This document shows positions 6,907 through 60,695 of a stretch of 64,000 bases of DNA, one piece after another (the stretch's first letter is position 1; each line of letters begins with the position of its first letter). The DNA is taken from positions 496,001 to 560,000 of the forward strand of contig MCFH01000029.1 of assembly GCA_002104945.1 (NCBI GenBank), in the 5' to 3' direction. The translations under genes were made by a program, and so were the position numbers. This DNA comes from Piromyces finnis finn (taxonomy: Eukaryota > Fungi > Neocallimastigomycota). The notes under the pieces are model-generated. The model did no database searches. It saw only the letters and a list, made by a program, of their open reading frames with translations, and had not been told where the DNA came from.

Positions 6907-9900
6907 ATGTCAGTCCTTTATATTAAAGATAAGAATTATATCAGACGTGGTACCCGGTCTTATGGTATCCCCTTAGATGATATTCGCTCCTTCTTTATCC
7001 GTGGTATTCGATCATGGTCAGTAAATATGCTATGGGAAAAACTCGAGGTTATTCTAGAAGATAAACTTAATTCAGTTATTAGTGTTAAATATTTTCAAAC
7101 TTTCAATGATCACTTTTTCTTAGTCAAGGTTCATGGTTCATCAAAAGATTGTATTAAAATCTTACACATGTTAAAGAAGAAACTTTCAGTTACCTCAATT
7201 TCCTTTTCAGCTCGTAGTAGAAGGAATCACAAATACACTTTTTCCACTCTCAAACGTAAAATTTTAGTTTCTAATAAACATCAACATTCTATTCAACAAT
7301 CATTTCAACAATCAGTTCAACAATCAGTTCAACAATCTCATCAACAATCCGATCTTCAACAAGATCTTCAACAGGATCTTCAACAAGTTTCCCATCATGA
7401 AAATATTCCAGATCTACAGCAAACACAATTTCAATCTCAACATTCAACAATTAATTCTAATAGTTCTATCAACTCTGATAACAGTTCAATAGTTGATAGT
7501 TCTTCAGTTTCACAGCCATCTAGTAATAGTTCTACTTATTCCTCTGATGCATCATCCATTAATAACGATGACTTTAATAATAATAATAATAGCAACGATT
7601 CTTCCTCATCCAACAAGCCTGATAACTTTTCTTTTTGTCTTAGTTGGAACACCAATGGGTGGAATCATGAAAAGAGAGATAGTATTAGCTATTTCACAGC
7701 TATTTTCAAACCATTATTCTTATGTTTCCAAGAAACTGGTAATGGTTCTGGATCGAATACAGATTATCCTTGTCGTGTTACTTTGCGAAACTATAGACAC
7801 TTTTTCAAGAAAGCTGACGAATCAGTTCCGGGAATGAGAGGTTTATATTTAGGTTTTCACAATTCGTGTCAAGCCTCACTTGAAAACTTCTCTGGAAAGT
7901 ATATTATTTCTATTTATACTTTTAGTCTCTGGAATAGATTCAAATGCTCGATTGGAAATGTTTATATGCCTCATAGTCATCACAACATCTATGTTGATCA
8001 TGCAAAGTTAGAAGTTCGCTTGTGGTTACAAACTCATTCATCCCATCCATCGATTCTTGTTGGTGATTTTAATATGTCTAAAGTAAAATTATCCAACTGG
8101 TTATCAACTAATGGATTAGGAGATTGGGAAATTCTTCCGCTTAGAGGGTCTACTATCTCTTGGACTCGAGGTGATCAATCTTCCGACATTGACCATGCTC
8201 TTATCAATTCGAAGATGAAAGATCTTATTCACTCAGGATCATTTATAAATAATTTTTATCCTGTATCAGACCATAAGCCACTTCTTATTAATGGTAAAAT
8301 TATTCCTATGGAAGATTTTTCTAATGACTTTAATGTTCCTAAGAAAATTCTGAAATGGAATAGATTAAAATGTATTGAGGAAAAGGAATCTATTCTCAGT
8401 CATAATAAATTCCAAATACTTTCAGCAAAATTCAACGATCCTAATGTTTCTACAGATGAACTTTCCAAAGAGTTTACTTCAACTGCTTTTTCAATTGCAG
8501 ACGAGCTCAGTATTACCTCAGCAAATAATGTTATAAAGTCTTCATTTCATATTTCACAACAAATTTTTAATCTCCAAAAAATCAAAATGAAGTTGTATAA
8601 GAGATTTAAAAAAGAAAGAATTTATGATATAGATGAATTTATTAAAAGAATTAAAATCTACCGTAAGCTCATTGATTACATCCACAAAAGATGTAATGAA
8701 TTTAGGAAACAAGAATATCTTCATTGGATTAAAACAGGATGTGAGTATATGAAGAGTCATAATCCTAAGAAGGCCTGGAAATGGATCAAGAAAACTGCAA
8801 AAATTGGAAAAGATTCTTTCTTTATTGCTCAACCAATTAAAAACAAAAATGGAGAATTAGTTGTTGCTACGGAAGAACAACTAGATGTGTGGCATGATCA
8901 TTTCGAAAAGCTTGCATCAGATCCAAGTGGTGTAAGTCTTGATTTGGAGCATTGGTATGAAGAACCAACGAATAAACGTTTTTCACTCCCTATGCTTGAT
9001 GAATGGGATATCAACCAAGATATTAGTATTGATGAAGTCAAGTCAGCTATCCTCTCTACTCCGAATTATAAAGCATCAGGTCCGGATGGTATTCCAATTG
9101 AATTTTACAAAGCATTAATTCCATCAAGTAATGATTCTAATAATGCTACAGATAATAATTCTTCCGGTAATACCACTTCAGATAATGATGCTTATGGTTT
9201 AAATTTTATTCTTAAATTATTCAACCGTATTTGGGATGGAGACTTCCCCAACTCATGGAATGAATCCAGTATTGTTTCTATTCCTAAGAAGGGAGATTTG
9301 ACAGATTGTGATAACTATCGAGGTATATCACTTATCAATAATGGTATTAAGTTGATTTCCAAAATTGTCACCACTAGAATCTCAGAATATGGTCTAAAGA
9401 ATAATTTCATTAGACCTGAACAATTTGGTTTTCGAAAAAAGGAAGAAAGTATCAGTCTTTTCATTTCAATCCAAGAAATATGCCGTAGACGTCAATTAGA
9501 TAATAAAGAGACATATTTGGCCTTTTTAGATCTCAGGAAAGCATACGATTCAGTCCCAATCGGTAATATTCTCCATAAATTAGATTGTTTAGGAATCCGA
9601 GGTAAGAGTTTACAATTCATCAAAAATTTATATTTAACATCTAAGGCTAATGTCAAATTAGATGGACAATTCTCGAAATCTTTTGATGTGAAGAAAGGAG
9701 TCCGTCAAGGATGCCCTCTTTCTCCTATTCTCTTTAATCTCTTTATTAATGATATATTTAAAGAGTGTGAAGATCTCGGAGTCAGTTTAGGTGACACTCG
9801 ATGCTGTGGTGGACTTTTTGCAGATGATATAGTTATTTGTGCTCCAACAAGAGGATGCTTAAAAAAGATGCTTAGAAGAGTTAATGAATGGGCCTTGTAT

Positions 9901-11433
9901 AATGAAATGGAATTTGGTATCCAGAAGTGTTCAACGATGGTGATTCGTCCTGAATCAATAGAAAATCAGAACAAGAGAGATCCAACATTTTACTTAGCAG
10001 GACAACCCATTCCAACTACTGATTGTTATACTTATCTTGGTGTTCCATTTGATAAGAATCTGTCCCTTAAACCAGTTATTAAAGCTCTTAATAACAAGGT
10101 TTTGAAAGGGCTTTTTTCAGTCAGTAAATTCTTAAGAAATCCTAATATTCCTATTCCCTTCAAAAAGCTAGTACTTAACTCACAAGTGATTAGCAGAGTT
10201 TCATACTTTGCACCATTACTTGGATCCAACAAAGCCAGGTCTAGAATTGCACAGAAGCATGTTAACAAAGGAATACGATGGGTTGCCGGAGTTCATAAAG
10301 CTGTATCGTTTATATCTTTATACTCTATTTCAAAAGATTTGAATATTCCTCCATTGTCAGCCAAATGTGCATTAGCTCAGGTTAGATGTTTTAACAAATG
10401 GAAAAACTCAAATTGTATTATCTCATACCTTGTCAATTACATTCCTAAATTTAGAAAATACACGTGGTGCAAATCAAGTAGGACACTTGATAAAAAACTA
10501 AAGAAACATGGAGATGTTAAAGCAGTTAAAAACTTTTATTGGAAAGATCTCAAAGGGAATTCAATCAAAGCGCAATATTATGATGATAATAAGTTTATTG
10601 ATACTAAAGATTTTATTAAATTATGTTATGAGTACCCAGAGTTTGCCTATGGCTTCTACTGGCTATTGAAAGCAAGAAGCGGATACAAGTTGGATGCTAG
10701 AGTTGCCAAAGCTGCCAAATTTGTTGATCCAGTTTGTCCTAACTACTGTCCATGTTGCAAGTGTGGAGATCAAAGTATTAAACATTGGTTATTAGATTGT
10801 CCAACATTTAGAGATATCCGTATTAAACATTATGATTCCATAGTCCAGCTATTAAATTTTTTCAGTCAACGTAATTCCAATAGTCCTATCAATAATAATG
10901 AAATTGATAATATCAGTAGAGATAGTAATAATATTAATAGTAATAGTAACAATAGTAATAATAACAATAGTAATAGTAACAATAGTAATAATAACAATAG
11001 TAGTAATAGAAATAATAATATTAGTAATGATAGCAATAGTGAAGATAATAATTCTAATTTAGATAGTAATTTAGTTAATGATAGTAATAGTTCTAATAAT
11101 CCGGTGAATATTAATGTGTATGATTATTCTAGTGTGTGCAGTAAAATATTTAAATTCCTTCTTGGGGGAAGAAGTTTTAACAATATCAATTACAATTCAA
11201 GGGAATGGAAAGAACTTTGTAAGCGTCAGATTCAATCTGGTACTAATGAAGGAACACCATTCTTGACGGTAACCGCGGAACTTCTAACCAAAATCATGCC
11301 TTTTGCTATTGGCCAGCAATGGTCAATGTTCAAAAGGTTTGAAGCAACATCCAAGAGCGTCAATGCTGAAGAAACAGTAAGACAGGCCAGGAGGGCCAGC
11401 GCAACCAATGGAGATCATAATTTTGTCCCATGA
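6907..11433 (+). CDS. LINE polyprotein: N-terminal extension, APE endonuclease, reverse transcriptase, C-terminal CCHC zinc motif
   Basis: APE motifs SWNTNG, CFQET, GDFN, DIDH and SDH. RT motifs NYRGISL, FLDLRKAYDSV, GVRQGCPLSPILF, LFADD and YTYLG. CPCCKC..HWLLDC zinc finger. 1508 aa, uninterrupted. Confidence 0.97.
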   Translation: MSVLYIKDKNYIRRGTRSYGIPLDDIRSFFIRGIRSWSVNMLWEKLEVILEDKLNSVISVKYFQTFNDHFFLVKVHGSSKDCIKILHMLKKKLSVTSISFSARSRRNHKYTFSTLKRKILVSNKHQHSIQQSFQQSVQQSVQQSHQQSDLQQDLQQDLQQVSHHENIPDLQQTQFQSQHSTINSNSSINSDNSSIVDSSSVSQPSSNSSTYSSDASSINNDDFNNNNNSNDSSSSNKPDNFSFCLSWNTNGWNHEKRDSISYFTAIFKPLFLCFQETGNGSGSNTDYPCRVTLRNYRHFFKKADESVPGMRGLYLGFHNSCQASLENFSGKYIISIYTFSLWNRFKCSIGNVYMPHSHHNIYVDHAKLEVRLWLQTHSSHPSILVGDFNMSKVKLSNWLSTNGLGDWEILPLRGSTISWTRGDQSSDIDHALINSKMKDLIHSGSFINNFYPVSDHKPLLINGKIIPMEDFSNDFNVPKKILKWNRLKCIEEKESILSHNKFQILSAKFNDPNVSTDELSKEFTSTAFSIADELSITSANNVIKSSFHISQQIFNLQKIKMKLYKRFKKERIYDIDEFIKRIKIYRKLIDYIHKRCNEFRKQEYLHWIKTGCEYMKSHNPKKAWKWIKKTAKIGKDSFFIAQPIKNKNGELVVATEEQLDVWHDHFEKLASDPSGVSLDLEHWYEEPTNKRFSLPMLDEWDINQDISIDEVKSAILSTPNYKASGPDGIPIEFYKALIPSSNDSNNATDNNSSGNTTSDNDAYGLNFILKLFNRIWDGDFPNSWNESSIVSIPKKGDLTDCDNYRGISLINNGIKLISKIVTTRISEYGLKNNFIRPEQFGFRKKEESISLFISIQEICRRRQLDNKETYLAFLDLRKAYDSVPIGNILHKLDCLGIRGKSLQFIKNLYLTSKANVKLDGQFSKSFDVKKGVRQGCPLSPILFNLFINDIFKECEDLGVSLGDTRCCGGLFADDIVICAPTRGCLKKMLRRVNEWALYNEMEFGIQKCSTMVIRPESIENQNKRDPTFYLAGQPIPTTDCYTYLGVPFDKNLSLKPVIKALNNKVLKGLFSVSKFLRNPNIPIPFKKLVLNSQVISRVSYFAPLLGSNKARSRIAQKHVNKGIRWVAGVHKAVSFISLYSISKDLNIPPLSAKCALAQVRCFNKWKNSNCIISYLVNYIPKFRKYTWCKSSRTLDKKLKKHGDVKAVKNFYWKDLKGNSIKAQYYDDNKFIDTKDFIKLCYEYPEFAYGFYWLLKARSGYKLDARVAKAAKFVDPVCPNYCPCCKCGDQSIKHWLLDCPTFRDIRIKHYDSIVQLLNFFSQRNSNSPINNNEIDNISRDSNNINSNSNNSNNNNSNSNNSNNNNSSNRNNNISNDSNSEDNNSNLDSNLVNDSNSSNNPVNINVYDYSSVCSKIFKFLLGGRSFNNINYNSREWKELCKRQIQSGTNEGTPFLTVTAELLTKIMPFAIGQQWSMFKRFEATSKSVNAEETVRQARRASATNGDHNFVP

Positions 11434-16540: not shown

Positions 16541-17839
16541 ATTTTTAATTATTAAAAAAGTAAAAATATTAAAAAAAAAAAAAAAAAAAATTAATTATCC
16601 AATAATAAATCTATTTAATAAGAATATTTCAACAAAATTTAATATATCAAAAAAAATTTTAATTATTATTATTATTATTATTAGCTTTTTCATTTTTCAT
16701 AATATATTAAAAATTGAGTTTATATTATTTTTATAAAACATTAAAGGCAGAATTATGTTCAGACAATTAACAATTAGCTAATAGAAATAAAATTCATATA
16801 CAAAACAATTAATATATAATACAATATACCAGGTTGCAACTTGGGTATTGTGCGTTCATGTAAAACCAAGAGGAGAAGTAACAATGAATGCCAAAATGAA
16901 TAATTTTAAAAAAGTGTCAACTTATTTACTATAACTATGCCATCTTTAGAACTTTTCTATAACTTGTACTTCAATTATTAATATATATTCTCAAAAAAAA
17001 AAAAAAAAAAACATCATTTTTGACATATCTTTAAATTATTATATATTCATTCGATTACTAGAATTATTAAAGAATTAAGTTTTAAAAAATTTAAAGCATT
17101 GATTACTTTGAAGAATTATATCTTTTATTATTATTACCAGTATAATCATTCTACTCTTTTTTTTGAAGAATAAAAATTTTACTTAAAGCCTTTATAATGA
17201 TTATATTTTAATTATAATAATTTTTCAATGCTATTAATTCTATTAGAATAAAAAGTTCTAGAGAATTAGATAATCATTTTTTTATACTTATGTACTATTA
17301 GTTTTCAATTCCAATAAATAATTTATAAAGTTTATAAGAATTTTTTTTTTTCAACAATTTAAATAATTAGTATCATATATATATATTATTATTCTTTTTG
17401 TATTTAATGTTAATTCTTAAAAAAAAAATGATAAACTTGGAATATAAGTGGGATTTATATTTATTATGAATAAAAATATAAAATATAATTCTTTTATATA
17501 TATAATATTTTCATTTCTTTTTTTTTTTTTTGGTTTAAAACATTATCATTCATTCCATAATTAAAACCATATTCACTGATTTAATATAATAAAAATATCA
17601 TTATTTTTTAATTTTAATATTATACTAAAATTTTTTAATTTTCTTTTTGTATTTATTATTGTTTAATTTTTGATTAATAATATTATAGATAAAATTATGA
17701 ATTAAATATTTAATAATTGCTATTATATTAATAGATAAATTTAATATAAAAAAAAAAAGAATGAAGATGACTTGGAAAGTCATTATGACAAAGAGATTAT
17801 TTAAAATAAATATTCAAATTATAAAATACAACTTACAAC

Positions 17840-18109
<270 letters not shown>

Positions 18110-18284
18110 GTCTATATAACTAGTACTAATACGTATTAATATTAATACTATCAGTACGTACTGGTAGCTACTATATTTTCATAAAAATATTTTCAATAAT
18201 TAATAAACTTTTATTTATAAAGTTTAAAAATTTTTTTGATCAACTTCTTTATATAACTATTGGTAAATGGATATTATAAATAAT

Positions 18285-18558
18285 TATTAATTACAAAACG
18301 TTTTATAATATGTTTTTAATAATAAACTTTATTTAATAATAAAATATATTTTATATTTTGGTAATTACAAAGTATTACAAAAATGGAAAATTACAATCAT
18401 ATTTATACTAATTGTGGCTTGTTAATAATACATGTCAAAATAATACAATGAGATGTAAAAATATACTTTAATATATTTTAACAACGATCTTAATTTAATT
18501 TAAATTCATTATATATATTCAAAAAGAAATATTTCTTTGTTTTTCAATATTTCTAACA
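18285..18558 (-). repeat. 3' LTR of Copia 1
   Basis: Identical to 24010-24283; preceded in sense by the PPT AGGGGAA. Confidence 0.95.
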
Positions 18559-18565
18559 TTCCCCT
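18559..18565 (-). promoter_or_regulatory. Polypurine tract of Copia 1
   Basis: AGGGGAA immediately before the 3' LTR TG. Confidence 0.8.
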
Positions 18566-18572
18566 GTCAAAC

Positions 18573-21500
18573 TTAATTTTCTGCATGTTTGAAAATTATG
18601 TTTGAGAATTTCTTCATTTTTGGTCCATTAACATTTTTAGTTAGAACATCAGCCAACATGTCTTCTGTATTGATGTATTCTAAAATTATTCTTTTATTTT
18701 TAATGTGGTCTTGATTGAAATAAAATTTTATATTTATATGTTTTAATTTTGAGTTTAATTGTCCATTTTCAATAGAAGTTTTACTTGATAAATTGTCTGT
18801 AAAGATTTTTATTGGTTTTTTAAAATTGAATAGTTCTTGTAATATGCTTCTTATCCATAATACCTTTTTTGAGCATTCCGTTGTGCTTATATATTCAGCC
18901 TCCATTGATGAAGTAGCTACTGTAGATTGTTTTCTTGAGGACCAACATATTGGATCATTTCCCATCAAAATTATGTGACCTGATGTTGATTTTTTATCTT
19001 TTGGGTCACCTCCTAAGTCTGAGTCTGAATAAGCTAAAATTTCCCCTGTTCCTGAATATTCGATTTTATAATTTTTAGTATAATTTAAATATTTTAAGAT
19101 ATTCATTACCTTATGCCAATCAGATATTGTTGGATTTTCCGCATTTCTGGCTGCTTTATTTACTGCATAGGCAATATCTGGGCGGCTACATTTTGATAAA
19201 TAAATCAAAGAACCTAAATGTAAAGATATAATATATATCTTTAGATTATTTAATAATTAATTATTAATTATTAAATAATAAATTAATATTTAGTAAAACT
19301 GATTATAAAATTTTTGAGTAAATTTTATGGAATAATTTAATAATAAATTATTTTATAATAATTCCGTTAAATTTAAATTAAGATAAATATTTAAGTTTAA
19401 GGAATAAAAGAATTTTAATTAAATTTAAATATTTCAAATATTTTAAATAATTAAAATATTTTTCAAATACTTTTTATTTAATTTTAGAATAGATTATACT
19501 TTTTTATTTAAATTTAGAATAGTTTAATAATTTTAACTTAGTTTTAAAAATAGATTTATTTATATTTCAATAGGAAATATATTAAGAATAGTATTGATAA
19601 TATTAAATTAATTTATAGAAAATACATGGGCTTTATTCAATTTTGAGTTTACTCAAATTGAATTAAAAGTATAATGAATTAGTTTAGTTTAGTTCTGTTA
19701 TTTTATTATTTAATTAAATTAGTTTTGTTTATTTTATATTAAATATATGTTTATTTAAATAGAATAATATATTAGAATATAATTATGAAAAAATATAAAT
19801 ACATGTAATTTTTATTTGTTAAATCGATGTAATTGTTATTTTCAATTTTTTAATTATTAACTATTATATAGTTAATAATCTTTTTAAGAGTTTTAAATAA
19901 AATGATTTTTAAAATAAAAATTTAATGTTTTATTTTTTTATTTTTGTGTTAATAAAAATTGTTTTGTTTTAAGTATGAAATCTGTTTTAAATTTTATACT
20001 TTTACACTAAAACACTTTTGTATGTGGTTTTTTCGAATGGTGTTTTATTTTCGTTTATATTATCTCCTGTGCATGGTGTTTTTGCTTTACGAGTATTTTT
20101 AATATTATATTTAGATAAAATGTTTTCAATATAATTTGTTTGTGATATTGAATATTTAAAACCATTATTTTCTATTTTTATTCCAAGTAAATAATTTATT
20201 TTTTCACAATTTGATATTTTAAAATTGTTTTTTATCAGTTTAATAGTTTTTTCAATTTCAAACGTTTTCCCAGTGATGATCATATCATCAACATATATAC
20301 CTATAATGCATGTTGTAATACCATTTCGTTCTCTTTTGAAAATGCATTGTTCAGAAATCAGTTGTTTGAAACCATTATTTTTAAGAAATAAAGTAATTGT
20401 TTCGTTCCATTGACGTCCAGACTGTTTTAAGCCATATAAAGCTTTGTTTAATTTCCAGTATCCTTTTCCATAATTTTTGTCTCCTTGTGGGATTGTAACA
20501 TATATGTCCTTATCTAATTTTGCATTAAGGTAAGCAGCTTTAATATCAAGTTGAAATATTTTCCAATGAAATTTTGCTGATAATGAAATAATAAGTTTAA
20601 TACTATCGATGCTAAGAGTAGGAGAAAATGTTAATTCATAGTCAATTCCTCTTATTTGACTATATCCTTTTGCTACTAATCTTGCTTTGAATTTTACAAT
20701 ATCATTATTACTGTCACGTTTTATTGTGAAAACCCATTTTGTTTTAATTGGATTTTTATTTTCAGGTAATTTTGAAACTAAATTCATAATATTGTTATCG
20801 TATAAATTTTTTAATTCATTTTTAATTGCTTCTATCCATTTATTTTTATATTTGCTTGTTATAGCATCATTAAATGTTAGTGGAGAATCCATGTTTATAT
20901 TTGCAATTTCCCTATCATAATTAATGTTTGTAGCACGTTTAACATTATTATTATCTATTTTACATCCAGGTCTTTTAACAGGTAAATTGTTAATTATTTC
21001 ATTAATTTTATATTTCTTATTACTTATTTTATAGTCGTTGTCATCTAATTTTCTTTTTGCTATTGAATTAAAATATTCTTGATATATTTTCTTCTTTTTG
21101 TTGTAAGATATATCATTAAAACTGTGTCTTCTTTTTAATTTTGTTTTATCTATATTAGCGTTTTTTGGATTAAAAGAATAATCATTTTCTGGTGAAATTT
21201 TGAAATTATCTAAAAGTTCTATGACATCTTCCATTGTATAACTTTGTTTGGAACAAGTGTTTGTATTGTTGATTCTATTATTGTTTTCAATAGCAACTTC
21301 ATTAATAGTTGTATTATTGCTATTATCTTGTATATTATTATCAGTTGTTATACTAATAATTTCTGAGTCTTCATCGAAAGAGTGTGTACTATCATTTATC
21401 TCATCATTAGTATTATTGTCATTTTTATGAGTTGATATAATATCATTATTATCTAAATTTTCATAAGTATTTTGAAAATTGATATCTGTAAAATTAATAT

Positions 21501-23964
21501 GATTATTGTTTGCATTTTGTATTTTTTCATCAGTGTCATTTGAAAATCTATCATCTGAGGGTAGTTTAAAATTATCATCTAGGTTTCTTTTCGATAAATT
21601 GAAATTGGATGGTTTATCTTCTTCAAATACGGCTTCACGGACAAGGTGTAATTTATAATCTTGATAATCCATTATAATGTAACAGTCATGTTTAAAACTA
21701 AGTCCTAAAAAAATACCTTCTTTACAGTTGTTATCAAATTTTCCTTTGTTTTGTGAATAATCCTTATAGTATGCTATACATCCAAATGTTTTTACATATT
21801 TTAGGTCAACTTTCTTGTTAAAAAATACTTCATTAGGGATAGAATTTCCAATACCTTTATGAGGGTTAATATTATATAAGAAATTTCCATAGTTGATAGC
21901 ATAATCCCAGAATCTTGTGTCTAATCTACTAGAAGCTAAAAGAGTTTTAGCACAATTGACTAACGTTTGGTTAAACCTTTCTGCTTTTCCATTAATTTCA
22001 GGAGTATATGGTGGCGAGTAAACCTTACTAATACCATTTCTTGAGCAGAAATTAATAATCTTTTTGTTCATGTATTCCTTTCCATTGTCAGTCTTAAAGT
22101 ACTTAACTTTGAGATCATATTTGTTTGTAATATATTTTATAAATTCTATAACATTTTTAGCAACTTCCTTTTTATTATTTAGTAAATATACCCATGATTT
22201 TCTAGAAAATTCATCAATAAAAGTTAAAATGAATCTTTTACCTGTACTAGAAATAAGATTCATTGGTCCCATCACATCGGAGTGTATTGTTTCAAGGATT
22301 CTTGATGCAACAGGTGTTTTACCTTTGTGAGGTAATCTTTTAAGTTTTGAAATTTTACATTGTAGACAATCTGGTTTTTTAATATTGTGAAGGCTTAAGT
22401 AATTTGTAAGATTGTCTTGGTAGAAATGTCCAAGGCGTTTATGCCAAAGACGATTACTGTATTCGTCTAGTTCATTTTTATTAGTAGATACATTAGAAAT
22501 TGAAGATTTTAAAACGTTTATTGGTATCTTAATGATGTTGGAAGGGTCAGCTATATATCTTCCAATTTCTTGTTTACATTTTTTGTTATTGTTATATTTC
22601 TTAAGAATTAATGTTGTTTTATTATTTATATAATCGATTTCACATGGATATCCTGTTTGTGTTAGTTTGATACCACTAATTAGGTTTTTGTTAATTTTGT
22701 CTGAATAGTATACATTATCTAAACGGATTGTTTCGTTGTTTATTTTACCAATAAATGTACCAATACCTTTGAATTCACATGTAGTATTGTTGGCACATTT
22801 CATATGTATATTTTCAAGGCGAAAATTTTGTAAAATATTTTTGTTATTTGTTATGTGTTCTGAACATCCTGTGTCATATGTCCACAATACTTCATTGTTG
22901 CAAGCATTATCTATGCTATTTATATTTTTGTAAAATTTATTATTTTCTGTTTGGCTAGTTGAAGTCTTGTTTGTTTTATCAATGCATTTTTCTTTTATTG
23001 AACATACCTCAATATGATCAACATGTTTTTCAAATAATGGTTGGAGTTCATCAAAGCAAATATTATCATTATCAATATCTTCATGTAAGTGATTATTGGT
23101 TCTTTCAACATTTCCAATGTGTTTTCCTTTTTTGTTCCATTTATTATAATGTTTTTTATTTTTAGATCTGTTTCTTCTTCTTTCTTCACGTACTTTTATA
23201 TTAAATCCACATTTATTAGTACTATGTCCTTTCATTTCACATATATAGCAATAATTTTCTTCTCTTTTAATTTTATTATCGAGTGGCTTAGTTGGTCTAA
23301 ATTTGGTTACATAATCAATATCCATTAAATCATCGATATTCTTAGGTTTATTTTCATTTTTTGATGTTTTTCCTAAATAATATTGTAAAACATTAACGAT
23401 TTTCTTGGCTTCTTCAATAAACTTATTTGGTTCAATATCTGGGTCAAGGGTTAATCTTGATTGAACTTCAATAGGCAATGCGGCATATATATACTTCGTT
23501 TTTTCCAAATTACCCAACTTATAATTCTTTTCGTCGAGTATATTAAAGATTTCAATTATCTTGTCAATTATATCAAGACTTACATCCAGATTTTTTGCAT
23601 TTAATGTATTTAACTCACGAAGATATTGAGTGACATCTTTTTTTCTTTTGGGGTCATATAATTCTTTGATTTTTGTTATAATTTCATAAGATGTTCTTTC
23701 TTTTCTGATTTTCCCTTTTACTTCTAAGGTAGTACTCATCAAGAGAAATACTTTAACTTTAGAATCTTCCTCTTCCAGTTTTTCTAATTCCTCGCTTCGC
23801 ATAGCTCCAGCTTTGACTTTATTTTGAGCGTCTGAAATGATGTCATTTTCAATGTATTTTAGAAGTCCTTTTGATTTTAAAACAGATTCAACAGTTGGAT
23901 ACCAGCAGTCAAAATTGGATTTGTCAAGACGTTCATCTGAGTAAAAATAATTAGCAGCATTCAT
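18573..23964 (-). pseudogene. Copia 1 gag-pol polyprotein, split inside RT by a 788-bp insertion
   Basis: CCHC knuckle CYICEMKGHSTNKC, protease YDTGCSEH, integrase WHKRLGH/HSDV/KTDNG/ERFN, RT YVDD and RNase H YSDSD. Removing 19219-20011 restores KTTYKSVLGSLIYLSKC. Confidence 0.92.
19219..20006. mobile_element. Nested solo LTR (unrelated family), 788 bp
   Basis: Begins TGTAAA and ends TTTACA (TG..CA, 6-bp inverted ends). 5-bp TSD CTAAA at 19214-19218 and 20007-20011. No coding capacity. Confidence 0.85.
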
Positions 23965-23995
23965 TTTGTTTTTTTTTTTTTTTTTTTTTTCAGTC

Positions 23996-24009
23996 TGAGA
24001 CTCTTAATC
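23996..24009 (-). promoter_or_regulatory. Primer-binding site of Copia 1 (complementary to the tRNA-Lys(CUU) anticodon arm)
   Basis: Sense GATTAAGAGTCTCA directly abuts the 5' LTR; identical in Copia 2. Confidence 0.8.
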
Positions 24010-24283
24010 TATTAATTACAAAACGTTTTATAATATGTTTTTAATAATAAACTTTATTTAATAATAAAATATATTTTATATTTTGGTAATTACAAAGTAT
24101 TACAAAAATGGAAAATTACAATCATATTTATACTAATTGTGGCTTGTTAATAATACATGTCAAAATAATACAATGAGATGTAAAAATATACTTTAATATA
24201 TTTTAACAACGATCTTAATTTAATTTAAATTCATTATATATATTCAAAAAGAAATATTTCTTTGTTTTTCAATATTTCTAACA
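24010..24283 (-). repeat. 5' LTR of Copia 1
   Basis: Sense reads TG...TA; identical to the 3' LTR. Confidence 0.95.
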
Positions 24284-25995
24284 ATAATAATGAATATTAA
24301 TAAATGGTAATAAAAATTATTTTTAAAATTATTATAAAAAAACAAAACTTTTTTTTTAGGAAAGGATTTTTAAGAAATAAAAGAAAAAAAAAGGTACCAT
24401 AACGAAATTTAATCTTTAAAATACTTTGAAACTTTACACTACAAAAAACGTTCGAAAAAATATTTTTATTGTAATAAAAATTATTTTATAATGGGAGAAA
24501 TTTTTTGATGGTATTTATTTTTATAAATATATTGAAATATAATAATAATATATACCAATATATTATAATATTCTATTTATATTAAATAATTTAAGTTTCG
24601 TATCACTCGTTTTATCGAAAAAACAAAACAAAACAAGTAAAAAAAAAAAGTAAATTTAATTTAAAATTAAACTTTGGTTTAGCCAAATAGAATTAAGAAA
24701 TTAATTAATTTTATATAAAATTAGGTTTGATTTTAATTAACAATTAAAGATAAACGGTATTGAACTTATTAAAAAAAATTATTATTAATGTTCCTTTTTT
24801 TTTTTTTTTATATTAATATAGTTAATAATAAAAAAAATTGTTTTAAAACAGTAAATGTTAATAATATTAATTTATAATTTCCTTTTTGGTGTGATGTATC
24901 AATATTATGCTTTATATGAAACATCTAAAACGAAAGAATAGTAAATAATAATAGTAATAATTATAATAATAAATAATAAAATGAACTCTTAAGACTATAA
25001 TTGAAAGATGTATAAAAACAAAAAAAAATAAAATTAAAAAAATAATTCAATTTGATTGTATTCCTATATTTTTAACTTTTAACATGTTGTTTTTATTCCA
25101 TATTCCATAATACTTTTAAAAAATATTCCAATTAATTTACTTTACTTTTTATTATATACAACAATTTAAAACGTGATTTATTCTTAATAAATTTTAATTT
25201 TTAGTAATAATAATTCATTTATTAATTAATAAAGTTATTTAATTCTTTTTTTTTTTTTTTTTTTTTAATTTATTTGTATTTATGTTTTGTTGTACATCTT
25301 TCATTTATCCTGTATAACCTCGTACAAAACAAAAAAGAAATTCTATTAAATTTAATTTTTTATTTTTTTTATTTTATAATTTGTGTTTAAATTTACATGG
25401 TATTAATGAAAAAGTGATACTATATAATACTATATCTTTTATACATAATAATAATAATAATAATAACTATATATATATTTAATTTTATATTTTATTTTTT
25501 TATTTTTAAATTTGCTTTTTTTTTTTTTAATATTTCACTTTTAAATACATAAAGTTGTTAAAAAAAAAAAAAAAGGTAAAATCATATAATTACCATTAAA
25601 TTATATAATTTATATTATAATAATATATATATATGTAAATATAAAGACTTTTTGAATTGTGTTTTTAAAAACTTGGTAATATAACGTAATTTTAAATTAT
25701 TTTTAAAAGTGTTTCTTATTCTTATAAACATAAGTGTTATATTTATAAAAGAATATTAAAAAAAAAAAAAGCATCAAAAACTATATTTGATTCTATTGAT
25801 TTACTGTTTGTATTTTTTTTTTTGTATAAATGAAAACTATTAATATATAGAATGTGATGTTTATTTACGTTTCTATAATAATTAATAGAATCTATTTATA
25901 TTCATTATAAAAAAAAATCAGTATATATCGATTATATATTTCTTTTTACTTTTGTTAAAAAAAATAATGTATTTCAATTATTATAATTTCTTGAA

Positions 25996-54696: not shown

Positions 54697-54741
<45 letters not shown>
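54697..54741. repeat. (AAT)n tract, left half of the array split by Copia 2 (right half 60661-60695)
   Basis: AAT repeats abut both ends of the element. Confidence 0.95.
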
Positions 54742-55011
54742 TGTGAAATAAATTTAATTAATAAATAATTTTATTAATAAGGTTAACAAAGAGAAAAAGT
54801 TACATTGTAAATATTACAGTTATATAATGAGATGTAAGGTCATGTGACCATAAAAAATAAAATAAAATAAATAAAAAATAACTTTCTCTACAACACGTAG
54901 ACATTACGTTTACAACACTTTTAATACATGTTTATGTTTTTATAAAATAGTCACGTGTGTAATAAATATATGATATAGATAAATAAAATTATGTGTCCAT
55001 AAATGTTCACA
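54742..55011 (-). repeat. 3' LTR of Copia 2
   Basis: Matches 60391-60660. Confidence 0.95.
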
Positions 55012-55020
55012 CTCCCCCTC
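55012..55020 (-). promoter_or_regulatory. Polypurine tract of Copia 2
   Basis: GAGGGGGAG immediately before the 3' LTR. Confidence 0.88.
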
Positions 55021-55023
55021 AAA

Positions 55024-58000
55024 TTAGATTTTCTTTAAGAATATCTTATTTGTATAATCAAACATTCTTGGACCAGGTAGATCTTTAGTTAGAGGGTCAG
55101 CTAACATTTCTTTAGTATTTACATATTCGATTTTTATATTGTTCTTTTCTATGTTGTCAATAATGAAGTGGTAGTGTATATTTATGTGTTTTAACTTTGT
55201 GTTTATTTCACCGTTTTCTATTATTTTCTTGCTTGCTTTGTTGTCGGTGAATAAAGTTATATTTTTGTTGTAATTAAAAATTTCGTCCACCATGTTTTTG
55301 ATCCATAAGATTTTCTTCGTATTCATGGACGTACTAATGTACTCAGCCTCAGCGGTAGATGTTGCCACACAAGTTTGTTTCTTGGATAACCAGCATATTG
55401 GGCTATTTCCCATTAGGATTATCCCTCCAGAGGTAGATTTAAAGTCTTCTGCGCCTCCGTAGTCCGAATCAGTGTATCCTTGTATTTTTCCTTCTCCACT
55501 GTATTCGATTTTGTAATGTTTGGTAGTAGATATGTATCTGAAAATATTTACAATTGTATTCCAGTCAGATACTGTTGGATTTTCAGATTTTCTTGCAGCT
55601 TTGTTTACTGCAAACGCTATATCCGGTCTTGTACATTTTGACAGATATATTAATGCACCTATTGCACTTTTATATTTTGTTTTATCAAATTGGTTATTAT
55701 TTGAGGTGTTCTTGTCGGTTGTTGTACATGGCGTATTTCTTCTACGTACGTTTTCCATATGAAATCTTTGTAATACATTATTAATGTAATTCTCTTGGGA
55801 AATAATGTATTTGGATCCTTTCTTTTCAATCTTTATTCCTAGAATGTAACTAATAGGGCCGCTATTTGATATTTTAAATCTACTTTTAATTTTGCTTATT
55901 ACTCTCTCTATTGTATTTGTTTTTCCAATTATAACCATGTCGTCTACATATAGACCAATTATACATTTTACGTATTTATTTTCTTTTAACGTATAAATAC
56001 ATGGTTCGGATTTTAATGGTTTAAAGTTATTATTTTTCAGGAATTTATCTATTGTTTTATTCCATTGTCTTCCTGATTGTTTTAAACCATAGAGAGCTTT
56101 ATTCAGCTTCCAGTATCCTCCCCCAAAGTTGCTATCTCCAAGCGGAATTGTGGTATAAATATCTGTATCCAATGGAGCATTGAGGTAGGCAGCTTTTATA
56201 TCAAGCTGATATATATCCCACTTAAATTTTGCAGCAATAGCAATAATAAATTTTAGACTGTCAATATTTAATGTAGGGGAATAGGTTAAGTCAAAATCAA
56301 TACCTTGTTTTTGACGGAAACCTCTAGCGACAAGTCTAGCTTTAAAACGTACAATATTATTATTGCTGTCCCTTTTAACAGCAAAAACCCATTTGGTAGA
56401 TATAATATTCTTGTTTTTTGGGATATTTTTAACCAGGGACATAATTTTGTTAGAATATAAATTATTTAATTCATCTTGAATGGCTGCTTTCCAATATTTA
56501 GAATTCGTACAAGACATAGCTTCTTTGTACGTAGTGGGAGCATCAGTAAAAACGGTAGCTATAAATTTGTTTTTGTGCTTCTTAGGAGTACTGGAATTAT
56601 TCAGAGAGGTAGGACTGCAAGGCCTTTTTCTTTCAGGATGGTAGGAATCATCAGATTTATCGGCCATGATATCATCCATGATATCATTTTCATCTTCCAA
56701 GTTTGGATCAGGATCATCCATAGATTTATTGTCATCTGAAATATAAGAATGGGAATCACGTGTCATATCAGGAGAATCAGAAATTTTTGAATTTAAATTT
56801 TTAGTATCATTAATGTGAATATTATCAGAGTAGATAGAATTATCCTGTGTAACGTTAGAATTTTTGCTAGAATTATGACGTGGATTATTTGGTTTATCAT
56901 CCAATAGAATGTCTTCATTTTTAATTTGAATTTTTGAAAAATTTTTATTAATAAAATTTTTTTTTCACTATGATCAGTATTAGGATATTCAGTAGTATTT
57001 TCACCAGTATTTTTGGTATAGGAAATATTTTCGGTGGTAGAATATTCAGTAGGAGAATTTTTATAATATTCAGGATTTTTAATGATTTCATTTTTGTTTT
57101 TGTCGGCAAGAGTATTACCATAACAAACGTAATCAGGACCAGGAGTTACAGGATATTGGTATTTATTATTTTCGTCAATATTATTAGAAATTTTGTAATT
57201 TTTCTTTTCGAAATTGCAATTGTCATTTGCAATTTCTTCTAAAACTTTTAAAATGTCATTTGTAAATTTATTTTTATTAAATTTCGAATTTGAATTATTA
57301 TTTTTGTTATTGGTTTGAGTGTCGCTTTTTAAATTACTGTTTAAATTGTTTTTTGAATTTTCTTCCATTTTGGAATTAATATTAGTCCTTATATTAGTTT
57401 CTTCTTTTTCTTTGGTAGTTATCTCTTCGTCTTTATATTTGGTATTTTCATAAGCTGGGTCCTCGTCCATATTGTTGTTATTACCTTCTTCAACCATTTC
57501 TTCTTCTACTTTTTCTTTTTCTATTTCTTCTTTTTCTATTTCTTCTTCATCATTATTATTGGAGTGGATATTCACCATTTTCTTGGAAGTAGTCCTTTCT
57601 GTGTTATTATTTTCTTTATTTATGATTGAATTTGTATCCGTATTGTTGTTGTTCTTTGATGATTCTGAGGGGTCCTTTCTGTCGTAATTATTGATATTAT
57701 ATGAATCATTGAAAGAGAAATACGGATCGTTTATATTTTTATTTTTATAATTATAATGTGCCGGCTTATCTTCACAGCATTCTATTTCCCTAGAATAGTG
57801 GATTTTAAGTTTATCACCACATATCTCCATGACGATATATGAGTGGTGTGCTTCACTGAACCCAAGAAATATTCCTTCCTTCGAGTTAGGCGCAAATTTT
57901 GACTTTTTAAGAGAATAGTCCTTAAAGTAGCATATGCATCCAAATACCTTTAGGTATTTTAGATCGGCTTCCTCGTTCGTAAACACTTCATCAGGAATTA

Positions 58001-60326
58001 AGTTATCGTTTCCTTGGTGTGGTATTTTGTTGTAAATATAACAAGAATATTTAACAGCAAAACTCCAAAAGTCTTCAGATAATTTAGCCCAATATAAAAG
58101 CGTTTTAGCAGAATTTTGAATAGTTTGGTTTATTCTTTCTGCTTTACCATTTAATTCATGTATGTAAGGAGGTGAATTTATCTTAGATATACCGTTTTCC
58201 TTACAATATTTTATAACTTTACTACTATTATACTCTTTTGCACCATCTGTCTTGAATGTTTTGACTTTATATTTGTCAAAAGTATTATTGGCATTCTCTA
58301 GGAATTCAATAATAATGTCCGGTGCCTCAGACCTTGACTTGAGAGTATAAATCCAGAGTTTTCTTGAGTATTCATCCAGCATAGTCATAAAATACTTCTT
58401 ATTATTGACGGATGAATTAAACGGGCCTGAAATATCGGAGTGAATAGTCTCTAGAACTCTTCCGGCTTTGGGTACGGTTTTGTTATGTGGAGACTTCTTC
58501 ATTTTAGATATTTTACAGTCTAGGCAAGGAGTTACTTTAATTTTATGTTGTTTTAGGTATTTCTTCAGATCCTTCTGGTAGAAATGGCCTAATCTCTTAT
58601 GCCATATACCTAAATCATCTTCAAAGTTTGCAATAAATGGTTCATTTATCTTTTTATTAATGTTTATGAGCTTAATTTTAAATTGATTTAATTCATTTGA
58701 ATACGTTTGCATTATATTTTTATTTTCAGAGTCCTTGAAAATAAGCCTGACTTTTCCATCATCAGTAATATCTATAATGCTTCTTAAACCAACTTTAGCA
58801 AGTCCTACACCACTAATTAAATTCTTGCTAACTTTGTCTGAGTACAAAACTTTTTCTAACTTGTAAGTTTTGTCTTTTACCTTAAACTCATATGAACCAT
58901 AACCACTAAATTCACATGTAGTTCCATTTGCACATCTAAGTTGAATGTGCTCTTCTGTGAAGTTTTCTAGAATGTCCTTATTATTAACGATATGTTCGGC
59001 GGCACCAGTATCATAGAACCATTCGTCGTATTTATTTTCTCCATACACATAATCTATATCCTTTGTGTTAGGAGTGTCTTCCTCTGTAACTTCATCCTTT
59101 TCAATTAGGTAGATATTTCTTTCTGTCAGAGGTCTGATATCTTCGAATTCTACGTTAATTCCATAATTTTCATTATCGTCATAGTCTTCGACGAAATCTA
59201 CTTCTTGTTCGAATTTCTTTTGTTGTTTTTTCTTGTGAACTTGCCTCCCTTGTTGTGAATTTCTCTTTTGTTTACTTTGGTTAAAGGCCCTGTTGTTGTT
59301 TTTTCTTTGGTCCCTTTCCATTTTGGCCTTTTGGTTGTATTCACACATTTCGGTAGAGTGTCCATGTTCACAGCAGATATGGCAGTAGGTACGGTGGCTT
59401 CTGTTTATATTTCTTCTATTACCGTAGCTTTTATTCTTTGTTGATTTGTTTTCTCTACTAACAAAATCAACATCCATTGGATCATCAACTTCGTCATCTT
59501 CATCTTGGTCGTTGTTGGTCCAATCTTCGAAGTAGGATTTGGCGTTGATATAACTTTTGACCTTCTCATAGAGCTGATCATAAGTTTCATCTAAGGTTAC
59601 ACTTACTTGGTTCTTGACACTTCTTGGAAGGGAATTGTACATATATTTTAGTTTTTCCCTTTCACTTAAGGACATTTTTAATTCAGACATCTCAAGGAAG
59701 ATTTCCTTGATTTTATCGATTGTTTTACTGACTTTGCTTACATCTTCTGTATGTAATTTTCTTAACTTCTTTAGCCAGTATTCAATGTCTGCATTGGCGT
59801 TACCGTATTTTGTATTCAACTTTTTGAATACTTGGTAACTATTGGAACTATGACCAATCTCTCTGAGGATCTTCTCATCCACATTTTGAATGATCATAAG
59901 GTAAGTATCAGCATTTAGCTTTTCAGCCGCTGATATAATCTCGGCCTTATAAATTGACAAGTTTGCCAATTTATTGGCGGCTACAACATTGTTATTAATG
60001 TTGCTGCTTGTATTGGCGTCCTCCCCCGTAGTCTTAATGAGGGTTTTATAAACAGACGCAAGATTGCTGTTAGGACGGTAGTCCGCGGCTTCAGCAATAA
60101 TCCTCATAATAGCCATATTATATTCATCTTTGAGATTAAGGTTTATCTCAAAGTTGTTGTCTTTAATGTTTCCAACTATGTCTTGTTCAAGGTAGCTAGT
60201 TAGACCCTGTCTAGTAGCGGCTGCCTTGATTAAAAGACTCCAAGTATCAAAGTTGGACTTTCCATGAAGACGTTGGTCATTGGCTAAAATGAATTGTTGG
60301 GACATATTAAAATTTTTAATACACAA
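55024..60326 (-). CDS. Copia 2 gag-pol in two overlapping frames (gag-PR-IN 56793-60326; RT-RH 55024-56904), one frameshift at an A9 run near 56957-56965
   Basis: CHICCEHGHSTEMC knuckle, YDTGAAEH protease, WHKRLGH/HSDI/KTDG/ERIN integrase, YVDD RT and YTDSD RNase H. Confidence 0.9.
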
Positions 60327-60376
60327 AATTTTGTTTTAAATTTTTCTTAAGAAATTTTTTATTATTGATTAGAGTT

Positions 60377-60390
60377 TGAGACTCTTAATC
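60377..60390 (-). promoter_or_regulatory. Primer-binding site of Copia 2 (tRNA-Lys(CUU) anticodon-arm complement)
   Basis: Sense GATTAAGAGTCTCA abutting the 5' LTR; identical to the Copia 1 PBS. Confidence 0.8.
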
Positions 60391-60659
60391 TGTGAAATAA
60401 ATTTAATTAATAAATAATTTTATTAATAAGGTTAACAAAGAGAAAAAGTTACATTGTAAATATTACAGTTATATAATGAGATGTAAGGTCATGTGACCAT
60501 AAAAAATAAAATAAAATAAATAAAAAATAACTTTCTCTACAACACGTAGACATTACGTTTACAACACTTTTAATACATGTTTATGTTTTTATAAAATAGT
60601 CACGTGTGTAATAAATATATGATATAGATAAATAAAATTATGTGTCCATAAATGTTCAC

Positions 60660-60660
<1 letters not shown>
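60391..60660 (-). repeat. 5' LTR of Copia 2
   Basis: Matches 54742-55011. Confidence 0.95.

Positions 60661-60695
<35 letters not shown>

Follow-up and report, generated by a model that had tools for sequence, protein, structure and literature searches.

Introduction

The primer of Drosophila copia is a 39-nt fragment of initiator methionine tRNA (tRNA-iMet), released by a cut within the 3′ strand of its anticodon stem. The copia primer-binding site (PBS) probably covers the positions of tRNA-iMet homologous to 27–40 of the lysine tRNA described below, and copia and Ty5 (genus Hemivirus) use homologous positions of tRNA-iMet.

Only Ty1/copia lineages use half-molecule tRNA primers, each lineage having its characteristic type of primer (PMC6317226). 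In plants, Bianca uses a half tRNA-Ile, and Osser, Bryco and Gymco-II use a half tRNA-Met; Lys is not among the half-tRNA primers listed for these plant-hosted lineages (PMC6317226). In Candida, copia-type elements have internal PBSs from tRNA-Arg(UCU) and tRNA-iMet (PMC4139406). The elements described here resemble them in being fungal and in using a non-Met tRNA through an internal region, and differ in the tRNA used and in the phylum of the host. Copia families of Puccinia, together with the Helenus TRIMs, carry PBSs complementary to anticodon-loop sequences of Tyr, Ile, Asp, Asn and iMet tRNAs; primer type has switched repeatedly among them, and non-autonomous partners share the PBS of their Copia helpers (Kojima 2024, PMC10886601). 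An internal tRNA-Lys PBS is already in print for the FunCo1 Copia clade of filamentous ascomycetes, a clade known almost exclusively from Pezizomycotina (Donnart et al. 2017, BMC Genomics 18:410, PMC5445492). Here we describe such a site in Copia elements of the gut fungus Piromyces finnis.

Results

Two Copia elements share a site directly after the 5′ LTR

The stretch analysed (the window, 64 kb) contains two complete Copia elements, both read from the minus strand. Their features are as follows.

Copia 1
18285–24283, minus strand: complete LTR retrotransposon of 5999 nt, delimited by its LTR pair, with ATTAT on both sides (18280–18284 and 24284–24288)
24010–24283, minus strand: 5′ LTR, 274 nt, TGTTAG...AATTAATA, ending in TA, not CA; 274/274 identical to the 3′ LTR
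23996–24009, minus strand: PBS, GATTAAGAGTCTCA, complement of tRNA-Lys(CUU) positions 27–40
20002–23964, minus strand: gag-pol ORF, 1320 aa, with Pol_BBD, gag_pre-integrs, rve, SH3_retrovirus and RVT_2 in copia order
19219–20006, minus strand: foreign repeat of about 790 nt inside pol, between RT and RNase H; boundaries accurate to about 4 nt
18573–19208, minus strand: C-terminal pol segment (RNase H part) in another reading frame, 60–79% identical to the C-termini of P0002 and P0012
18559–18568, minus strand: polypurine tract, GACAGGGGAA, abutting the 3′ LTR
18285–18558, minus strand: 3′ LTR, 274 nt, 100% identical to the 5′ LTR

Copia 2
54742–60660, minus strand: complete LTR retrotransposon of 5919 nt, with ATTAT flanks (54737–54741 and 60661–60665)
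60391–60660, minus strand: 5′ LTR, 270 nt, TGTG...CACA; 270/270 identical to the 3′ LTR
60377–60390, minus strand: PBS, GATTAAGAGTCTCA, abutting the 5′ LTR
60370–60374, minus strand: CTCTA, a possible secondary contact, in register with tRNA positions 20–24 after two unpaired bases
56793–60326, minus strand: gag-PR-IN ORF, with Retrotran_gag_2, Pol_BBD, rve and SH3_retrovirus
55024–56904, minus strand: RT-RNase H ORF (RVT_2), in a different frame, overlapping the gag-PR-IN ORF by about 110 nt
55012–55020, minus strand: polypurine tract, GAGGGGGAG, read beside the 3′ LTR
54742–55011, minus strand: 3′ LTR, 270 nt, 100% identical to the 5′ LTR

Both elements have the Copia domain order (Gag, protease, integrase, RT and RNase H, with an RVT_2-type RT, by Pfam-type domains) and are Ty1/copia LTR retrotransposons. 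Both are young elements, and each has a pair of 100% identical LTRs. The LTRs of Copia 2 have TG...CA ends and those of Copia 1 have TG...TA ends. The ATTAT flanks of the two elements lie in AT-rich, (TAA)n-like low-complexity sequence, so the duplication could be due to chance and is weak evidence for a target-site duplication of Copia 1.

The similarity between the LTRs of Copia 1 and those of Copia 2 does not exceed that of shuffled sequence (global identity 55.7%, against 57% for shuffles). Between the polyproteins, identity is 36% in Gag-PR-IN and 60% in RT. In each element the 14-mer GATTAAGAGTCTCA begins immediately behind the 5′ LTR, with a spacer of zero. These comparisons agree with a previous reading of the DNA made from the sequence alone, which had described divergent Copia elements with unrelated LTRs sharing a 14-mer directly after the 5′ LTR. 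That reading had also remarked on the absence of a TGG start; no TGG-type or other candidate PBS was seen next to the LTR of either element. Both copies of the 14-mer in the window are on the minus strand, a detail that the reading had left out, at the two PBS positions, and no further copy was found there even with one mismatch allowed. Shuffles of the window gave an expectation of 0 matches, again even with one mismatch.

The interruption of Copia 1 pol is marked by a gap in the tblastn alignment of homologues. It begins with GT and ends with AG, and was considered as an intron; this was ruled out, as it is a multi-copy repeat. At least 40 genomic copies were found with 98–100% identity, many of them in same-orientation pairs 5.3–6.1 kb apart. 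The interruption is therefore a solo LTR that belongs to a different family of LTR retrotransposons. The 14-mer sites listed include none that adjoins the LTRs of this family, which thus probably uses a different PBS.

Copia 2 has a two-frame layout (overlap at 56793–56904) despite its 100% identical LTRs, and this could reflect programmed frameshifting, or else a copy that is defective and was made in trans. The two 5′ LTRs in the window have in common an identical stretch of 15/16 nt on the minus strand, starting 172 nt (Copia 1) or 94 nt (Copia 2) upstream of the PBS and containing the 10-mer ACATCTCATT. In 12 other families whose LTRs were checked the 10-mer is missing; the stretch may be a promoter or start-site element, or may be due to chance. 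Elsewhere in the window, a long (TAA)n microsatellite (17742–18138) follows the 3′ LTR of Copia 1 at a distance of about 150 nt, and an ORF of 1508 aa (6907–11433, plus strand), in which RVT_1 reverse transcriptase was the only domain, is probably a non-LTR retrotransposon.

The site is complementary to the anticodon arm of a host lysine tRNA

No tRNA genes were found in the window with ARAGORN. A pattern search of the genome located a host tRNA-Lys(CUU) gene (G000:C227:117727-117800, locus L063/L064) with a standard 73-nt cloverleaf. Its standard positions 27–40 read TGAGACTCTTAATC, the exact complement of the PBS, and position 26 is G. The complementary segment consists of the 5′ strand of the anticodon stem (27–31), the loop with anticodon CTT (32–38) and two bases of the 3′ strand (39–40). 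The sequence-only reading had assigned the complement to exactly these positions, and the anticodon arm of the host gene does not differ from that assignment. The PBS is thus hemivirus-like: it adjoins the 5′ LTR and is complementary to the anticodon arm of a host tRNA, not to its 3′ end. The predicted ΔG of the 14-bp PBS–tRNA duplex is −19.8 kcal/mol.

The DNA search and a search with an exact 20-mer that included the flanks of the tRNA's own sequence agree on a single tRNA-Lys(CUU) site in the genome. Between the gene and the end of contig C227 there are 35 nt, and the apparent 3′ end of another tRNA is found just upstream of the gene. With one gene found so close to a contig end, further copies may be unassembled, or the primer pool may be small. 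An Rfam tRNA search of the genome, in which 63 of about 2900 candidates were scored and 15 loci were typed by ARAGORN, gave tRNA-Arg(UCU) at the 15 typed loci, alone or with other tRNAs. This tRNA-Arg(UCU) is represented by at least 34 equally scoring copies (e.g. L031-L060), in some loci with tRNA-Glu(UUC) 10 nt upstream (e.g. L033:1419-1574).

The site is conserved among Copia families of the genome

In the 56.5-Mb genome we counted 166 occurrences of the 14-mer and 0 of a reversed control pattern. Exactly one of these occurrences is a tRNA gene, leaving 165 other sites. We surveyed families at 30 loci of 3 kb, the first 30 of the 166 sites, together with the two window copies. All 30 sampled sites were in primer-binding-site context and none was a tRNA-Lys gene. 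By LTR, leader and Gag, the loci and window copies fall into at least nine families, with many pairs below 40% identity in Gag. In every family examined A is the last base of the LTR, with the 14-mer immediately behind it; in seven families copia-type Gag and Pol_BBD start 0–216 nt after it. The motif is thus conserved in other copies, in at least nine families of this genome and in related elements from other assemblies (below), as the earlier proposal demanded.

One multi-copy LTR family, family E (L006, L022, L023, L026, L027, L028, L030), retains the 14-mer letter-perfect and has no gag. In L026 (L026:1-798:-) an ORF located about 700 nt downstream encodes a Phage_lysozyme domain (E 1e-20) behind an N-terminus that resembles a signal peptide. 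The N-terminus is shared by L028 and L030; the scanned part of the L030 ORF, which runs off the end of the locus, gave no Pfam match, and a protein-atlas search with the family-E ORF gave no match. Family E is presumably mobilised by the Copia families, and retention of the 14-mer in a family without gag is the behaviour expected of a cis-acting replication signal. A passenger sharing the PBS of its helper recalls the Puccinia Copia and Helenus elements, which differ in that their hosts are rust fungi and Lys(CUU) is not listed among their primers (PMC10886601).

The site is found in related elements from other samples

The nearest homologues of Copia 1 Pol are proteins on AT-rich contigs from metagenomes and assemblies, together with two Orpinomyces models. 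On four contigs from different samples (L065, L066, L068 and L069), with 38–62% Pol identity to Copia 1, the exact 14-mer stands directly after the LTR. One of these, a JGI metagenome contig (L066:245-9254), contains two tandem Copia elements that share an LTR, both with the Lys PBS. The matches in public runs were low-share Logan contigs, with two short pieces inside gag.

Metagenome contigs were also scanned with the 16-mer CAGATTAAGAGTCTCA. The matches were mostly chance matches in apparently bacterial contigs, some labelled human-gut metagenome; Copia genes lay downstream of the 16-mer in ten records on nine contigs. On four contigs with Copia genes behind the Lys site (L092, L096, L129 and L140) the GC content is 40–52%, and these therefore cannot be anaerobic-fungal. 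In two further metagenome contigs of about 47% GC, L075 (12512-12527 and 12689-12704) and L091, the 14-mer is followed by GCGACCGGTTTGAAGCTA, which looks like a D-arm complement. L075 has two inverted copies of the 14-mer 160 nt apart, and no Copia gene was found within reach of the L075 and L091 sites.

Some families have further complementarity to the D arm

The sequence-only reading had suggested that pairing extends beyond the 14-mer in both window elements, through TAGAG of the D arm in Copia 2 and TCAGTC of the D loop in Copia 1. For Copia 2 the in-register pairing of CTCTA with tRNA positions 20–24, after two mismatches, is real and is kept in all six sampled copies of the family; its support is marginal (shuffle P about 0.07). 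The extension proposed for Copia 1 had to be given up: the host D loop is CTCAATCGG, and nothing matches beyond 4 nt. In Copia 1 and most other families no pairing was found past 4–5 nt beyond the 14-mer.

Among all families examined, three have D-arm pairing beyond the 14-mer. CTACCGA of family F pairs with tRNA positions 16–22 in register (shuffle P 0.036). ACCGATT of L066 pairs with positions 14–20 in register (shuffle P 0.014) and, with three further in-register matches at positions 22–24, is the longest in-register D-arm extension found. In L068, GATTGAGCT pairs with positions 9–17, shifted by 7 nt (shuffle P <0.002). These family-specific contacts all point to the 5′ half of tRNA-Lys(CUU) and strengthen the identification of the tRNA, though most families lack them. 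Directly behind the 14-mer, the complement of G26 was never seen (0 of 14 families).

The AT-rich Lys-site elements form a well-supported RT clade

In an RT tree, the AT-rich elements with the Lys site, including Copia 1, Copia 2 and an Orpinomyces protein, form one clade with 99/98 support. The Lys-site element L140 falls in a separate clade with 100/100 support, which also holds L193, L194 and a Golovinomyces protein (P0160). The PBSs in this second clade differ: L193 has a TGG-type 3′-end PBS, and L194 (P0124), a close relative of L140, has the iMet half-tRNA PBS GGTTATGAGCCC. An iMet half-tRNA PBS, GGTTATG(G/A)GCCC, is found at the same place in more distant relatives of the Lys-site clade (P0083/L067, P0124/L194 and Pythium P0224/L195), and these iMet-half users are among its nearest non-Lys relatives in the tree. 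A plant-like relative, L071, has the PBS TGGTATCAGAGC. The tree was built from sequences other than the FunCo1, copia and Ty5 references, and its sole Pezizomycotina protein is P0160; the Golovinomyces contig (L192) ends short of the PBS.

With one well-supported RT clade, and iMet half-tRNA PBSs at the same place in distant relatives, the sequence-only reading of a hemivirus-like lineage that switched to tRNA-Lys is a fair description of the gut-fungal clade, which would use Lys instead of iMet. The choice of a Lys half probably also arose elsewhere, independently, and exchanges of primer between iMet half and Lys half have probably taken place repeatedly.

That reading had named no precedent for a tRNA-Lys half primer, but there is one. 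The same PBS is in print for FunCo1, whose PBS 11-mer is contained in the window 14-mer (PMC5445492), and it is also present in copia elements on the contigs of 40–52% GC that are not from gut fungi. Like the window elements, FunCo1 elements are fungal members of the Copia superfamily with the same tRNA-Lys PBS. The window elements may differ in their place in the phylogeny: in the tree they belong to a separate AT-rich clade with Orpinomyces, the lone Pezizomycotina protein lying in the other, 100/100 clade. The FunCo1 paper calls the PBS 'classical', and half-tRNA priming, the 27–40 limits and the host tRNA are undiscussed there (PMC5445492). A full-text literature search for the PBS sequence gave no other relevant paper, and none on Neocallimastigomycota. 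What is new here is the host lineage and the clade for a known half-tRNA priming; there is no new mechanism.

Discussion

The 14-mer is complementary to the host tRNA, lies directly against the LTR and is conserved across families, non-autonomous elements and samples. We consider it likely, from the sequences, that Copia 1 and Copia 2 use a 5′ fragment of tRNA-Lys(CUU) as minus-strand primer, by the hemivirus mechanism. As in Drosophila copia and Ty5, the PBS abuts the LTR, is complementary to an anticodon stem-loop instead of a tRNA 3′ end, and has no TGG. The difference is in the tRNA, an iMet 5′ fragment there and Lys(CUU) here; in addition, the copia primer was shown biochemically, whereas the present one is predicted from sequence.

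We infer the following scheme for where the tRNA is cut, which molecule primes and what part G26 plays. A 5′ fragment of tRNA-Lys(CUU) with its 3′-OH at C40 would anneal to the PBS inside the particle, and reverse transcriptase would extend it into U5, the first base added being the complement of the terminal A of the LTR. Later plus-strand synthesis would copy the primer back and so regenerate the PBS. The terminal A is found at both LTR ends and would thus be copied DNA, which in the standard scheme of reverse transcription would require the primer 3′-OH to be at C40. Since an internal tRNA sequence can prime only after cleavage, a 3′-OH at C40 implies a cut in the 3′ strand of the anticodon stem.

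The length of the site would follow from the same scheme. G26 is normally N2,N2-dimethylated in eukaryotic tRNAs and cannot pair. The limit at position 27 may therefore be set by m2,2G26, blocking both pairing and copying. With both running from the cut after C40 as far as G26, the PBS would come to exactly 14 nt. A parallel is the retroviral PBS, which is 18 nt long and ends at m1A58. In the loop, t6A37 could weaken pairing, and the same applies to the iMet primer of copia. In some families the second contact with the D arm would probably help to select or anneal the primer.

Other roles for the 14-mer were considered. It might bind the anticodon arm of intact tRNA-Lys(CUU), as a signal for packaging, dimerisation or translation control, with reverse transcription starting from another primer. 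Secondary tRNA contacts outside the PBS are known in retroelements (the Ty1 boxes and the HIV A-rich loop), and the D-arm matches of a few families are contacts beyond the 14-mer that would suit such binding. We nevertheless regard this as unlikely: an intact tRNA has no 3′-OH at position 40, which would make a second primer site necessary, and neither a TGG-type site nor any other candidate was seen next to the LTR. Moreover, the 14-mer is exactly where a PBS is required, with zero spacer in every family, and relatives carry an established iMet half-tRNA PBS at the same place.

The fragment might instead be a stress-induced 5′ half of tRNA-Lys(CUU) cut in the anticodon loop, so that transposition would be coupled to the production of tRNA halves, as the sequence-only reading had proposed. 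The idea is appealing by analogy with tRF biology, and nothing in the sequence speaks for it. The first three bases of the PBS pair with C40, U39 and A38, and the primer must reach position 40. Halves cut in the loop end at about 33–38 with a cyclic phosphate that a polymerase cannot extend. Pairing through A38, U39 and C40 would place the primer end in the 3′ strand of the anticodon stem and not in the loop; we therefore set the coupling aside as quite improbable.

Self-priming of the Tf1 type, with a primer cut from the transcript's own 5′ end after this has folded onto the site, is known in Tf1/Sushi and predicted for some plant copia lineages (PMC6317226). Here it has very little to recommend it and was excluded: neither window LTR has a complement of the PBS that reaches 6 nt, the window holds no other copy of the motif even with one mismatch, and the same 14-mer, equal to a host tRNA sequence, is carried by families with unrelated LTRs. 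Chance resemblance or neutral inheritance from a common ancestor was rejected as next to impossible, for although CAGATTAAGAGTCTCA also matches many unrelated, apparently bacterial metagenome contigs, shuffles of the window predict no match, the genome has 166 against none for the control, and the 14-mer has stayed letter-perfect across families while LTRs, leaders and Gag diverged beyond recognition.

If priming by the half-tRNA is accepted, a wider proposal can be made, which we advance tentatively and regard as possible rather than probable. A conserved activity would cut tRNAs between positions 40 and 41, and this cut and the stop at m2,2G26 would fix the 14-nt PBS; at least two distant Copia clades, the anaerobic-fungal one and that of the metagenome element L140, with its close relative on the iMet half, would have settled on exactly positions 27–40 of tRNA-Lys(CUU), and every sampled family, with the lysozyme passenger, would depend on an apparently single-gene tRNA. 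The use of these positions by at least two distant Copia clades, and of the homologous iMet positions by copia and Ty5, would point to such a conserved cutting activity. If this is true, the host would have one point of control over the whole Copia superfamily.

Standard PBS finders test tRNA 3′ ends only and would call these abundant young elements PBS-less, whereas a half-tRNA-aware search with the 14-mer finds 165 sites in the genome at once. Work on copia in the 1980s left open how half-tRNA primers are made and copied, and this step has stayed so since. The 27–40 limits give a concrete, testable model that bears on both parts of it, with a cut after C40 and a stop at m2,2G26. In this early-diverging fungal lineage, every sampled Copia family, and a non-autonomous element that spreads lysozyme genes, carries the complement of the same internal piece of one rare-codon tRNA.
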